In this document: positions 648-6,448 of the stretch, piece after piece
Layout: each line of letters starts with the position of its first letter
How positions within the stretch are numbered: position 1 is the first letter of the stretch
Source: Marsupella aquatica
Taxonomy: Eukaryota; Plantae; Marchantiophyta
Assembly (NCBI GenBank): GCA_973895155.1
Contig: OZ316897.1
Location: 8,331,832 to 8,395,831, forward strand
DNA length: 64,000 bases
Direction: 5' to 3'
Notes under the pieces: generated by a model
What the model saw: the letters and a program-made list of their open reading frames with translations, nothing else
Databases searched by the model: none
Told to the model about the DNA's origin: nothing
Made by a program: the position numbers and the translations under genes

Positions 648-3600
648 TCACCTAGGCTCAACAACGCTCACATAGTTACTGCCTGATCCAAAGTTGGAAT
701 TGACGATGTAGTGAGACTCTCGGGATTCCTTTAGTCTTGTTTTCGGGTAGCCTTTCGACTCTGGCTTCAACCCATCAAAATGTCTAAGAGACGGTTTTAT
801 CAGCTCAGGAACTCCCATATCGCTATCGCCAGAGAGTAGTGACACCACACGAGCCATGGACGGGCGCAGTGCAGCATTTTGGGTGCAGAGCAGAGCAATT
901 TGAGCGACTTTTTGTATTTCCTTCTGAAATCCACCTGCCTTTTTCAACCTAGGGTCGAGAATATCCATTAGCCTTTCCTCTTCGTACAGTTGCCAAATCT
1001 GTTTCATAGAAAAGTAAAAGAGTGAGAATAGGTGAGATCCAAGGAGACTACTCTAATAGCTTTTCTACACAAAATGCCAGTTAACGGTCATTTCTCCTAC
1101 TTTGGCAGCGGGGACATCACTTATGAAAGTAGAATATTGCTGATCATCAAATAGAGTTTGCCAGGGTAAATGTCAAATATCCTCACCCAGTCGAGAAGGT
1201 ATGCCATGTCTGTTGACAACCTCAAATCCAAATTGGTTCTACCACTGAGGAGCTCCAGCACCACTATGCCATAACTAAACACATCCGCCTTCTCAGTCAA
1301 CTGGCCACGCATTGCATACTCTGGAGACAAGTACCCACTTTACAAAGAGGCCCACCAAAGTCAAACTCCTTGTAATTATGTGATGGGAAACAAGAAACTA
1401 CTTTGGAACAAAACAGTACTCTGTCTGCAAAACTGCAAACTAGTGTCGTTCAGGACATTGCTCTCACACATATACCTTTAGGGTAAGAGGTACAGAATCA
1501 CCGATCATCGGGTCAAGACTTACACTGTTCCAGCAACGCGTGTGCTGACATGACTTTGAGTATCATTGACTAGCTTCGCGAGGCCAAAGTCAGAAATTTT
1601 GGGCTCCAGGTCCTTGTCAAGAAGAATATTGCTAGCCTGTTTCAGTACACACAACACGACAGTATTACAGAGAAGACTCCATAATAAATACTTTGGGAGC
1701 TCTAGCAGAAATCAATATTTATCTGAGCAGAACAAGGCATCTGAGTCTTATTATGTTCAGATGAGTTGACACAGATATTAAGTCACACACCATATGCAAA
1801 TGATCTCAAATCAATAGCAATCCTACCATGATATCGGCTTGAAGCATACCTTCACGTCCCTATGGATGATCCGTGTCTGACAGCCCTCGTGAAGGTAAGC
1901 TAATCCACGAGCAGTGCCAAGCGCAATTTTTAGTCGAGTTGGCCAATCTAGAAAAATTGGGTATTTAGGATCTGCACAAGCCAAGTTTCAACGCGTTATT
2001 GAAGGTTCCATACAGCTAAACAACCATTTCGCAGCTTGATTTTCCAAATCTTGGGGTATAGATTCCAATACAATGTGCAACCGTGTGGAACATCAACGAT
2101 CGTTCTCTAGTCTGAATGAAAAAGAAATGGTTAGGATGCTGCCGCCAGACAAAGCTCCAGAGGACACGGCATAAACAAGTCTTGTGAACTGCATTGGGCA
2201 CGGCAATACCATCCTTGATCTATTAGTCGTGTACAAAACAATCTCAAGGGGGCAGAGTCAATGTGAGTGGTCCCCTACCAAAGAGAGCCTGATAAAGACT
2301 TTTATTCTCCAGAAATTCGTATACAAGCAACCGTTCATCTCGCTTGAGACAGCATCCTTTCAGTTTCACCAGGTTTCGGTGTTGCACGCTGGTTATTAGA
2401 GTTACTTCATTCAAGAATTCGCGCTTTCCTTGTCGGGATTTTGTCAGTAGACGTTTGACTGCCACTTCGTTTCCATCTGGTAGTACACCCTGAGAGGCAA
2501 CGAGGCGAATTGTAGATCGTCAGAGGTATTCAGAAGTGTAATTTGTTGATGCTGAGAATTAGATGAGGAACACCTAGACTCGTGCAATTTGATAGCTTGG
2601 CCTTGGGTGGTGAATTAATATCCTTCGCAGCTTGAGCGAAACAAGCCCACTTGAATTTCCCTCCAATGACCTGGAATCCAACCTGCAGAAAAGTCTTAAA
2701 TCTTGAGGCATTGCAGTACGAACATTTCCAAAATAAAGGAGTTGACGGGAGGGTGCCGGGAGGGGGGAGGGTGAGCCAAAATAAGGGGAAAACAGAATTC
2801 GCAATTCATATTCGGCATTGCAACTACACACTTCTGTTTGAAAAGGAATTTTCCAGTGATCAATTAGACTTTCAACTGAAATCTCTGAGTCTAATGCTAC
2901 CAAGAGCAGTGAACAAGTAAACCGTCTTCGAAGATAGGAACGAGGGCTGAATCTGTCCATAGTAATCAGACGGGTTGTGTGAGGAATAATCGTTCTCAGG
3001 GTTTGAAAGGTAATTCCTCAGATTACACCTAAGACGAAGACTGCCACTTTACTCCCACTGGTCTTCAAAGCATTTCTAATGAATCCACCAACGTTTGGAG
3101 ACCTGAATGAGGGAATGAGGATTCGACCACTAATACTGTTGCCAGGTATATAAGTAAGGATATTGTATCAACACCTTGAACACTTCTCCGAAACCGCCTT
3201 CCCCGAGCTTATTATCGTAATCAAATTTTCCGGTCGCAGCCTTCAGCACTTTGTAGGAGAATATGGTTGGACGCCCTTCAATCCTTGCAATTTCTGCAGT
3301 TCAAACATAAATCAACACCGGCTCAGTGACAAATGTTGTGGAAAACACAAGGACGGGATACTCCTCATTCAATAACGTGCCAATTCAGGTTGGGCTTCAA
3401 CACCAGAAAATTCCGGAGCGAAACACTTTTCTAGAAACTGTCAACAACTCTCCATGAAAATTCGGTCATATGAAAACAAGACTCCAAATTTTCTACGAGC
3501 AAGTTTTTCGGAACACGAGTTACTACTACACTTTGGGTCCTTGAAAACGTTGCGGTTGGGATGGATTTGGGAATTCCTTCAAACCATGAGCCAATTTTTT

Positions 3601-5216
3601 AAGGCAACGGAACGCCAACTCCCATGACAGTATTTTCATGTGTACAACTTACTCATTTTACAGAATATCAAGTTGGAGAGAGATAATTGCCGGGTTAGCG
3701 TTGTTCTGGACTTAGCCATAAAAACCTGGAACTTTTTAACGAGGTAGAGTGTCGTTCCAATTCAGCTATCTGATGAGAAACAAAGTAAGAACTAAAGACG
3801 AAGATGGGAATCACAAATAATAAGTACCTTCCTGCTCCTGGAGGAGCTGGGGAGACAGAGCATTTTTCCTCCTCCATATTGCCAGCCCAATTATAAGGCT
3901 CGTTCCCAGAAGTAGCCCACCGCTAATGGACAACGTCCAGGCCAGAATCTTTGTCAGGTTGTGTTTATTTGAAGCCCCTTGATATTTGGCTGCAACCGAA
4001 ATCAAAGGCCAACGTTGATAGAATTAATTAGTCTGCGAAATGTATTCAGCGCTGCTTTCCGTCCATACTTACCCCAAATGGCTAAAGCCACCCTCTCATT
4101 GCCGGATGATTGAATAACTTCAAATTCCAGGGATCATTGGTTACCTCGATTGCCCCGAGAGACCAAATTGAATACGAGCCGTTCAATGGCGTCCTTAAAA
4201 AACTTGTTAGCCTCAGTTTTCTGTAGGCGGACGTGAAAGTTGAACTTCCACACTGAGAAAATTATTTTCATGGACCCTGCTCTTCGATCTTTTCCTATCT
4301 CCTCAGTCCCTTCCAGGCTTAGCTCCATACGGCACTTCTGCAAGGAAATGGTGTACAGTAGAAACTCGCAATCTTGTCTTCTTAAACTGCTGATTTTGAT
4401 GACTGCCATGGTTGACACCTGACTTAACTAGACTAGTGTAAGTACCCGCCTCCAAAGTTGCTTGCTATTGTTTGTTGAGGTGAAGTGTGCTCGGACTGGG
4501 ATGACTTGAGAGCATTCAATTACTGTTGCGCGGAGGCGATCCTTTCCAGAGAACTTCCTCTCCATTCGAGCGCAAAGGTAAACATTCAAAGTGTTCTTAA
4601 CAAAATTCTACGACTAAAGGTAGAAATCTGTTGCGAAGAACACGAAAGAGCAAGTAGACATAATTATAACAAATGTAGGACGACACATGCTTCGGCAAGT
4701 AAAACCGTCAAATAAAGAGAGGTCTAGCTAGGAGACGTACGTACCGCAAGTAGGGTCATCAGGGAACGCTTGTCCGGAGGGTAGGGCCGTCAGCAAACGG
4801 GGGCATTTTTGGCAAAGATCAGTCGTAATGTTACAACGCCTTGGAGCCTGGACTTGAAGCGATCGATTGAAAGCACTTGGGGGGTAGAAGGTAAGCAGAC
4901 AGAAGCACGTCGGGTACTGCTGCTCTACACTAGCTAAAGCCGAGCAACAGCCTTGCGGAGGTTGGGGGTCCGACGGCTGGGATAGTACCCACATCACACA
5001 TGGCTGGAGCTTCAGCTCCGCCTGTGAGCATTGTGTAGTATTGATGACCAGGCATGGAGCAATTTTCAAAAATGTTGCTCCACAACTAGCAACCGATGAA
5101 TCTAAAGCACTTGTAGAAATTTTCCTCGAGGAGAAAAGATGGCCATCTCCAAGACAAACGTTGCCTGCGCACGATAGAACCAGTAGCAGAGCCACAAAAA
5201 CCTGCGAAGCTTTCAT
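648..5216 (-). CDS. Receptor-like Ser/Thr kinase with N-terminal signal peptide, nsLTP/prolamin-like (8-Cys motif) ectodomain, one TM helix and an RD kinase of the LRR-VIII/DUF26(CRK)-like clade; ~566 aa, 8 exons
   Basis: Exons (minus strand): 5216-4745, 3989-3828, 3293-3175, 2489-2279, 1971-1850, 1636-1524, 1337-1187, 998-648. All junctions are GT-AG and phase-compatible, totalling 1701 nt (567 codons). Exon 1: [23 protein letters not shown] signal peptide, then C-x9-C-x16-CC-x12-CFC-x21-C-x6-C. Exon 2: TM segment [25 protein letters not shown] followed by RRK. Kinase motifs: [81 protein letters not shown]. An alternative in-frame ATG lies at 5249. Confidence 0.9.
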
Positions 5217-6448
5217 ATTCGACCCCCAGAACTTCCTTCGCTTATCCATTATCCATAACGCAGTCGAATGACTTATTGCAGTCTCCCTTGTCCTGTCCAG
5301 TATAACTGTATAAACGTCGACAATCTTTCCCTGGACTCGAGCTCAGCAACCTTAGACAATGTGTGATGAGAGCTAGGTCCCACAAAGATTTGACCCCACA
5401 AGCCCACAGTAGTGTAAAGTAGACACGTTCACCCAACGAACTCTCGACAGAACTCCATCCATATCCAGTCTCCCTAACACTCCGCCATCAAGTCCAGTCC
5501 ACGAGGCAGAAGCCACAGAAGTCCTGTAGCTGCAGCGCTGACTACTATTGTGATTGAGGACTCTCTACCGCCCTATCCTTCTCCCAGCATTTCATTTCGC
5601 AGACCTTGACAAGCGAGTGGATCAGGAGTTGTCATGCCGTACTTGAAAGGGTACACCGCTTTCCTGGGAGAGCAATTCTCTTCGTTAATCTGTCAAGAGA
5701 AATGGCTCACCATACTACAGTATTCAAAATTGCAGCATTGAACACAGACAAGTTGACGAGAGCTGACCATGAGACCATCTTCAAACTGTGTGAGAAACTT
5801 CGGGGTGTGAGAGAAACTGTTCCAAGTTTCAACCAGAAGACTGGAACAGTCTAGTCTAGCTACCGACCGATCCTAGAGAGATCATATCAGACTGTCTTCT
5901 TCAGTATCTTCAGTATCTTGCCCTCACTGTCCTTGCACGCATCATGACTGAAAATGTGATACTGGTACTGGCTGTACTTGCTGGGTCGCGACCCTACAGA
6001 ATGATTGTTTTACACGTGAAATAGCTCATCGACACTATCAGAGCCGTCGATCCCCAGCTTCATTAATACTGCCTGGCGGCATAGCTTCCAAACTCTTTTA
6101 TTGTACCAGTCCTTACTTACTTCGTGTGCCGTATAATAAATGTCAAACAGCTGTGGATTCTCTCTACAACGGATTCTCTCAAAAGTGTCTCGAACATAAC
6201 AAATAGCCAAGACTGCGAGAGAGAGAGAGAGAAACCTAGAGACCATCGTTTCCACTTCTCAAGGTAGATCACAAGCGCTTCATTGGGGCAATAGTTATCA
6301 GAAAGTCCATAAATAGTGTTTTAACCCCTTGCTCCAGCTTATTTTTTTAAAGGTTTTTACGTTTTGGCCAGAGTGGTTAATGTAGAGTGTGTGAAGGAGA
6401 AGATGCTCAAAACATTACTTATCATTATTTTCCTAACCATCACATCTT

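Follow-up and report, generated by a model that had tools for sequence, protein, structure and literature searches.

A predicted receptor kinase with a lipid-transfer-protein ectodomain in the leafy liverwort Marsupella aquatica and its bryophyte relatives

Gene model and domain architecture

The locus described here lies on the minus strand of a 64,000-nucleotide stretch of Marsupella aquatica DNA (assembly GCA_973895155.1, contig OZ316897.1, forward-strand positions 8,331,832 to 8,395,831; hereafter the window), where positions 5216-648 carry a gene whose predicted product joins a lipid-transfer-protein (LTP) type ectodomain to a transmembrane (TM) helix and a receptor kinase. We put a probability of about 0.8 on the locus being one intact, selectively maintained leafy-liverwort gene for a single-pass LTP-ectodomain receptor-like kinase (LTP-RLK), and have little doubt that the architecture and the gene model themselves are correct. 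Exon coordinates, frame and splice sites were checked by script on the window sequence: there are eight exons, all introns are GT-AG and their phases fit, and the joined exons make 1701 nt, that is, 566 codons plus TGA. An earlier reading made from the sequence alone had described the eight-exon join as open for 567 codons, which the script recovers as 566 residues and the stop; it had also placed an exon 1 donor (TGC G, then gtacgt) in phase 1 and an exon 2 acceptor (ttgcag, then CC AAA) that restores the frame, and both were found exactly so. Pfam, PDB and HMMER searches were run exon by exon; the joined protein was built locally only and was used for the frame check, BLAST, dN/dS and the kinase tree. 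The features, all on the minus strand, are as follows.

4745..5216, minus: exon 1, start codon, signal peptide (residues 1-23) and LTP-like ectodomain, 157 residues (frame, splice sites, Pfam)
5040..5084, minus: N-terminal extension, residues 45-59, with an extra C-x9-C helix before the canonical first LTP helix (cysteine positions, model)
4803..5039, minus: LTP_2 or eight-cysteine-motif (8CM) core, residues 60-138, predicted four-helix non-specific LTP (nsLTP) fold (Pfam, AlphaFold, Foldseek, VIA, dN/dS)
4745, minus: end of exon 1, phase 1; donor identical in the Calypogeia orthologue
3990..4744, minus: intron 1, 755 nt, GT-AG (Sphagnum mRNA and Calypogeia model colinear across the junction)
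3828..3989, minus: exon 2, 162 nt, short linker, TM helix, RRK stop-transfer and juxtamembrane segment
about 3874-3948, minus: single TM helix, residues 172-196, within exon 2 (hydropathy)
3175..3293, minus: exon 3, juxtamembrane segment and glycine loop GEGGFG
2279..2489, minus: exon 4, kinase N-lobe with the VAVK lysine and the alpha-C glutamate (Pfam PK_Tyr_Ser-Thr, 44 bits)
1850..1971, minus: exon 5, kinase as far as the HRD catalytic loop (Pfam, motifs)
1524..1636, minus: exon 6, kinase DFG and activation segment (Pfam, motifs)
1187..1337, minus: exon 7, kinase C-lobe with the SPE motif (Pfam)
648..998, minus: exon 8, end of the kinase and C-terminal tail, final VEPR and then TGA (648-650)

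Searching with the gene model by tblastn, we found no additional coding piece in intron 1, in keeping with the earlier claim that no further ectodomain exon lies between the LTP and TM exons, and no second copy of the gene within the window.

Exon 1 carries the ectodomain, and its residues 60-138 pass the Pfam cut-offs of both LTP_2 (PF14368; 33.7 bits, cut-off 22) and Tryp_alpha_amyl (PF00234; 27.9 bits, cut-off 21.7). A sequence search of the PDB with exon 1 gave barley LTP1 as its sole match (E 0.21), and a search of the ESM Atlas with the Sphagnum ectodomain gave no usable match. AlphaFold, given 65 homologues, modelled exon 1 with a confidence (pLDDT) of about 90 over residues 60-140 and placed helices at 40-55, 60-69, 71-79, 88-100, 102-110, 118-127 and 134-143. 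When this model was compared with the PDB by Foldseek, ranks 1-16 were all plant nsLTP1 structures, with target TM-scores of 0.53-0.61; the best match was maize 1mzl (E 0.07, target TM-score 0.59, 2.6 Å over 79 columns). In VIA-align, where some 80 of the roughly 91 residues could be paired with the same nsLTP1 chains, Z-scores to these were 5.1-6.9 (6.9 for maize 1mzl), to DIR1 4.1 and to unrelated chains at most 3.3. The AlphaFold check proposed by the sequence-only reading thus returned a four-helix LTP fold that matches plant nsLTP1 and nothing else convincingly, and the Pfam pass and the fold matches, the latter modest in absolute terms, together establish that exon 1 carries, as modelled, a four-helix nsLTP fold.

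The cysteine pattern is richer than that of a bare 8CM. The mature ectodomain has 12 cysteines (45, 55, 63, 73, 90, 91, 104, 106, 128, 135, 138 and 157), and the skeleton C...C...CC...CxC...C...C is fitted by C63, C73, C90-C91, C104-x-C106, C128 and either C135 or C138; the nsLTP eight-cysteine motif noticed earlier is therefore present as a core, but four cysteines (45, 55, 157 and one of 135/138) lie beyond it. Helix 40-55 holds a second C-x9-C pair (C45, C55) before the canonical C63/C73 pair. Across nine bryophyte homologues, C45, C73, P86, C90, C91, C104, C106, C128, N129, C135 and C138 (window numbering) are invariant and the motifs TFYPP and CN(I/V/L)T.D.C..CP are shared; in the latter, the C-N pair next to Cys7 never varies, and eight of the nine keep the whole N-x-T sequon for N-glycosylation. 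A classical nsLTP is a small soluble protein of about 7-10 kDa, secreted or anchored by glycosylphosphatidylinositol, whereas here the fold is the ectodomain of a 566-residue TM kinase.

The hydropathy profile of the protein has two peaks only, one over the signal peptide (residues 3-25) and one over the TM helix (177-195), which is followed by RRK. Exons 4, 5, 6 and 7 each match Pkinase or PK_Tyr_Ser-Thr at successive profile positions, so that the Pfam pair expected beforehand, LTP_2 and Pkinase, was obtained in full by scanning the exons; no exon matched LRR or malectin in Pfam. The RD kinase motifs GEGGFG (242), VAVK (260), HRD (358), DFG (378) and SPE (404-406) are all in place, and they are conserved in the nine homologues apart from an A for S in SPE. 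Judged by its motifs, the kinase is intact, with a complete RD set. Hydropathy, Pfam and motifs agree here with the earlier description of a TM helix and RRK stop-transfer leading into an intact RD kinase.

Two side observations concern the locus itself. Eleven codons before the chosen start there is a further ATG in the same frame (5217-5249; open reading frame [ORF] 4728-5249); the Calypogeia annotation begins at the later of the two, from which a canonical signal peptide results. In all four sequencing runs, contig depth is raised to 3-10 times the gene baseline at 4142-4946, 2081-2298 and 3370-3459; the first of these regions has loose contig ends at 4225/4227 and 4935, and many of the contigs concerned are only 90-99% alike. 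The last ~190 nt of the LTP exon and ~520 nt of intron 1, and likewise two short intron pieces (2081-2298 and 3370-3459), are therefore multi-copy elsewhere in the genome. These pieces could be dispersed gene fragments or the result of transposon capture.

One gene across the LTP/TM junction, under selective constraint

The claim that one gene encodes the signal peptide, the LTP fold, the TM helix and the RD kinase depends on the 4745/3989 splice, and the annotation of a liverwort and a spliced mRNA of a moss make the same join. In Calypogeia fissa, the 569-residue P0169 (assembly GCA_965154635.1, contig CBCUJL010000054.1; annotated as "unnamed protein product") is 85% identical to residues 1-566 of our model over its full length and passes LTP_2, Tryp_alpha_amyl and Pkinase in Pfam. 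Its genomic locus (L008) has eight exons of 478/165/119/211/122/113/151/351 nt, compared with 472/162/119/211/122/113/151/351 nt in Marsupella, and the splice sequences at the LTP/TM junction, the donor (CTTGCG, then gtacgt) and the acceptor (tgcag, then CCAA), are identical in both. The two genes differ in coming from separate species (dS ~0.48) and in two small indels in exons 1-2. Nucleotide identity is 81-95% in the exons and 58-71% in the introns, the introns being colinear and partly alignable. On these sequence comparisons, the Marsupella gene is the orthologue of P0169.

The evidence from mosses began with exon 1 as a HMMER query against 1.84 billion representative sequences, among which one full-length kinase was found. 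This protein, P0014 (602 aa), is an uninterrupted LTP, TM and kinase ORF on a 3146-nt JGI contig from Sphagnum (L001). The contig aligns to Sphagnum fallax chromosome 07 DNA (L003) in seven blocks at 99-100% identity and is thus a spliced mRNA. Its exon 2 has 162 nt, equal to that of the Marsupella gene, and its later blocks of 121, 213, 236 and 151 nt match the Marsupella exons within the overlap of adjacent blocks. The Sphagnum chromosome 07 copy has a single block of 235/236 nt where the Marsupella gene has exons 5 and 6 (122+113 nt), the intron between them being absent; all other intron positions are common to the two. Against L001, the gene model gives a single tblastn high-scoring segment pair, covering residues 62-566 and running across the LTP/TM junction.

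An alternative is that two neighbouring genes have been wrongly joined, a secreted LTP ending at 4728 and a kinase with a first exon of its own. The exon 1 ORF does run past the donor, to the stop at 4728 after six codons; the databases contain ORF calls of an LTP-only type (P0001, P0082); kinase-less LTP-like proteins exist (P0009 from Sphagnum balticum; contig L006); and the sequencing runs for Marsupella are DNA-like only, all four runs with the locus giving contigs that span the introns, without joints, so that the 4745/3989 splice is placed by homology. Yet the phases of exons 1 and 2 are compatible, and since exon 2 supplies neither a start codon nor a signal peptide, a separate kinase would have to start inside the TM exon. 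Moreover, the C. fissa annotation has the identical join, the joined ORF is found on the Sphagnum mRNA contig, and the intron position and an exon 2 of 162-165 nt have been kept from mosses to liverworts. We consider a wrong join very improbable. P0001 and P0082 were also considered as stand-alone LTPs and rejected: both are ORF calls of the prokaryote style that continue past exon 1 into intron sequence and, ending in a translated donor region, they provide no evidence for a separate LTP gene. Contig L002, which carries P0001 (an exon 1 ORF with 72% identity), ends short of exon 2.

A third indirect line of support for the splice, strong like the C. fissa annotation and the Sphagnum mRNA, is the coding constraint seen in the comparison with C. 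fissa. The dN/dS ratio is 0.16 for the whole protein, 0.13 for its kinase and 0.08 for its LTP core, with dS of ~0.5-0.7, which puts the ectodomain under the tightest constraint of all. Purifying selection is strong on the signal peptide, the LTP domain, the TM helix and the kinase. A decaying or recently assembled, lineage-specific fusion without function could be suspected from the multi-copy state of about 4227-4935, a segment that includes part of exon 1 and of intron 1. Against this, the ORF is intact with all catalytic motifs present, dN/dS is low both overall and in the LTP core at a dS of ~0.5, and orthologues or paralogues are found in four other bryophyte genera; a gene without function is the least credible of the explanations that we considered, and we retain that of an intact, maintained gene.

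A bryophyte family and the origin of its kinase

The kinase region of P0014 and a profile made from nine full-length members served as queries for the family, in word-seeded searches of at most 8000 candidates, and ten full-length family proteins were re-scanned with Pfam. The search for the combination of LTP, TM and kinase, as proposed in the sequence-only reading, found members in four bryophyte genera among the matches listed. Among these matches, the proteins with LTP_2 and Pkinase came from bryophytes only (Sphagnum, Physcomitrium, Ceratodon and Calypogeia), and no vascular-plant protein with an LTP-type ectodomain of this family was among the matches listed by the word-seeded searches, which by themselves do not establish that such proteins are absent. 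The Sphagnum members fall at four loci, on chromosomes 03, 07, 13 and 14. The named moss members are the following.

Sphagnum magellanicum: CY35_07G010800, CY35_03G138900
Sphagnum fallax: BDL97_07G004700, 03G143700, 13G005100, 14G003900
Physcomitrium patens: P0168
Ceratodon purpureus: KC19_8G059000 (P0172), M758_4G090000; P0175 is also listed for Ceratodon

Additional unnamed JGI and Logan sequences belong to the family, and a Logan contig from another organism (L005) has the LTP exon followed by kinase exons. The moss proteins resemble the Marsupella one in their order of signal peptide, LTP-like domain, TM helix and LRR-VIII-2-like RD kinase, in the motifs TFYPP and CN(I/V)T.D.C..CP, in their intron positions and in an overall identity of 50-56%; the C-terminal -EPR is found in eight of nine aligned bryophyte homologues. 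The Sphagnum paralogues P0156 and P0154 fall below the LTP_2 cut-off and keep the cysteine frame. Proteins of the Ceratodon KC19_8G059000 type differ in having two tandem LTP domains. Two tandem LTP-like domains before the TM helix and kinase are seen in a moss branch (P0172, P0170 and P0173) and in the Logan ORF P0002, and the two LTP_2 stretches of the moss branch indicate that the ectodomain module was duplicated. The analysis shows the LTP-kinase fusion to be a conserved bryophyte subfamily with multiple paralogues and not an accident of annotation.

Kinase-less relatives of the ectodomain were also encountered. P0009 (Sphagnum balticum CAM6011075.1, 275 aa) consists of an LTP-like domain, a TM helix and a short basic tail, in the manner of a receptor-like protein, and positions 233-715 of L006/L007 contain an LTP-like exon; the 10 kb downstream of it include no kinase exon. 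The domains of these proteins are of the TFYPP / CN.T..LC..CP type. They may act as partners of the kinase-linked form, or it may have arisen from them.

Outside the LTP-RLKs, the nearest kinases are those of LRR-VIII-2 (At1g56130/At1g56140-like), with 58-65% kinase-domain identity, whereas cysteine-rich receptor-like kinases (CRKs) and SD kinases reach 43-47%. By identity, the first half of the earlier description of the kinase as LRR-VIII/CRK-like fits, and the CRKs are more distant. In a quick tree, the LTP-RLKs were nested among LRR-VIII-2 kinases and all 16 of them formed one clade (SH-aLRT 89). In a careful tree, the LTP, LRR-VIII-2, CRK/SD and DUF642-RLK groups branch from one multifurcating node, within which the moss LTP-RLK clade (93/93) and the liverwort pair (99/96) are recovered. 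The identities and the quick tree favour a place for the kinase in the LRR-VIII-2 neighbourhood. Two receptor kinases with a precomputed non-kinase Pfam match to PF04862, P0191 (Ginkgo Gb_25562, 629 aa) and P0282 (Logan, 625 aa), adjoin the LTP-RLKs in the quick tree (95*) and leave the same multifurcating node in the careful one; they may represent another unusual ectodomain on the same kinase lineage.

With the LTP-RLKs constrained to monophyly, the tree gained 0.42 log-likelihood units over the unconstrained one (p-AU 0.50). Given the shared intron positions, motifs and -EPR terminus, the simplest reading, though not a proven one, is that the LTP-kinase fusion formed once, before mosses and liverworts separated. 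Exon shuffling is a plausible origin for it, because the LTP module is a single phase-1 exon.

Proposed function and comparison with known systems

Lipid perception at the plant cell surface, be it of cuticle or spore-wall precursors or of microbial lipids, is poorly understood, and we know of no characterised receptor kinase with an LTP fold. We infer that the LTP domain is a ligand-binding module on the apoplastic face. If so, the ectodomain would be displayed on the apoplastic, outer face of the plasma membrane, where its helical bundle would take up, inside or at its surface, a small hydrophobic molecule or a partner loaded with such a molecule; occupancy by the ligand may then alter the oligomerisation of the receptor and lead to activation of the kinase. 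That the ligand is hydrophobic we infer from analogy with every solved relative, and that it is a lipid is a tentative proposal on which we would not ourselves bet.

A different possibility is that the LTP fold is real and its role has nothing to do with lipids: the domain could be, like the DUF26 of CRKs, a compact cysteine-rich surface to which a protein, peptide, glycan or cell-wall polymer binds, or alternatively a module for constitutive oligomerisation or a spacer. The four extra cysteines and the extra helix beyond the 8CM core would fit this, as would the conserved C-N pair and a sequon kept in eight of nine homologues, features pointing to a decorated surface; the dN/dS of 0.08 fits equally well any specific binding function, and P0156 and P0154 have retained the cysteine frame while dropping below the LTP_2 cut-off. 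On the other side, the solved relatives returned by the fold search are all lipid-binding nsLTPs or DIR1, and the hydrophobic positions lining the helices, for example in the TFYPP stretch, are kept across the family. We regard a non-lipid role as falling only a little short of an even chance, with the remaining probability going to functions of another kind.

The most far-reaching reading of our data is that LTP-RLKs are ancient receptors pre-dating the moss-liverwort split, which feed the direct perception of an apoplastic lipid (a sterol, a microbial lipid, or a precursor of cuticle or sporopollenin) into a kinase of LRR-VIII-2 type, and which have been constrained in bryophytes and lost or replaced in vascular plants. 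As a whole, we hold this to be rather unlikely. If it were true, the LTP-RLK would be the first plant receptor kinase known to bind its ligand through an LTP fold. Against our main account of the gene and its mechanism, together with the DNA-like character of the Marsupella runs, stand the following points: in the careful tree, the node uniting moss and liverwort LTP-RLKs collapses; scores of the fold matches are modest (Foldseek E 0.07; Z below 8), which is usual for a helical domain of ~80 residues; lipid binding by the ectodomain is argued from analogy; and the lipid cavity could be closed or reshaped by the additional cysteines and the N-terminal helix. The presence of a member in Physcomitrium patens, where gene targeting is routine, makes the lipid-sensing idea directly testable, and the LTP-RLK, well validated and conserved, is a candidate lipid-binding receptor kinase that lends itself to experiment.

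The suggestion of the sequence-only reading that the architecture might be undescribed does not hold: it has already been annotated in Sphagnum, Physcomitrium, Ceratodon and Calypogeia, and LTP_2 is in the metaRLK catalogue. The literature that we searched contained no functional study of an LTP-ectodomain kinase, nor the term LTP-RLK. The LTP-kinase architecture is thus catalogued, annotated (as "hypothetical protein") and functionally uncharacterised, and the contribution of our analysis lies in its validation, distribution and evolutionary context, not in the discovery of a new kind of receptor.

Among known systems, the closest precedent is the metaRLK survey of 528 species (10.1101/2023.12.21.572927; published as Liu et al. 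2024, Mol Plant 17:658, cited in PMC13174206), which counts LTP_2 among the Pfam domains of RLK ectodomains not previously characterised. Its "pECD" class comprises Pfam domains found in RLK ectodomains and unreported in the RLK literature, and "LTP_2 for lipid transfer" is named there with reference to its Fig. 2A, which covers ectodomains seen more than 40 times (10.1101/2023.12.21.572927). The entry describes the same combination, LTP_2 in the extracellular region of an RLK, but it is a one-line mention, and the main text gives no taxon distribution, phylogeny, structure or function for it.

Two further systems resemble the LTP-RLKs in one half each. LTPGs, the lipid-anchored LTPs, and other membrane-tethered LTP-like proteins likewise display an LTP fold on the outside of the plasma membrane, and LTPGs have a role in cuticular lipid export; they differ in that the LTPG is held by a lipid anchor and has no cytoplasmic signalling domain. 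The LRR-VIII-2 kinases, in turn, share with the LTP-RLKs the most similar kinase domain, but carry an LRR and malectin ectodomain of ~600 residues in place of the ~135-residue LTP fold.

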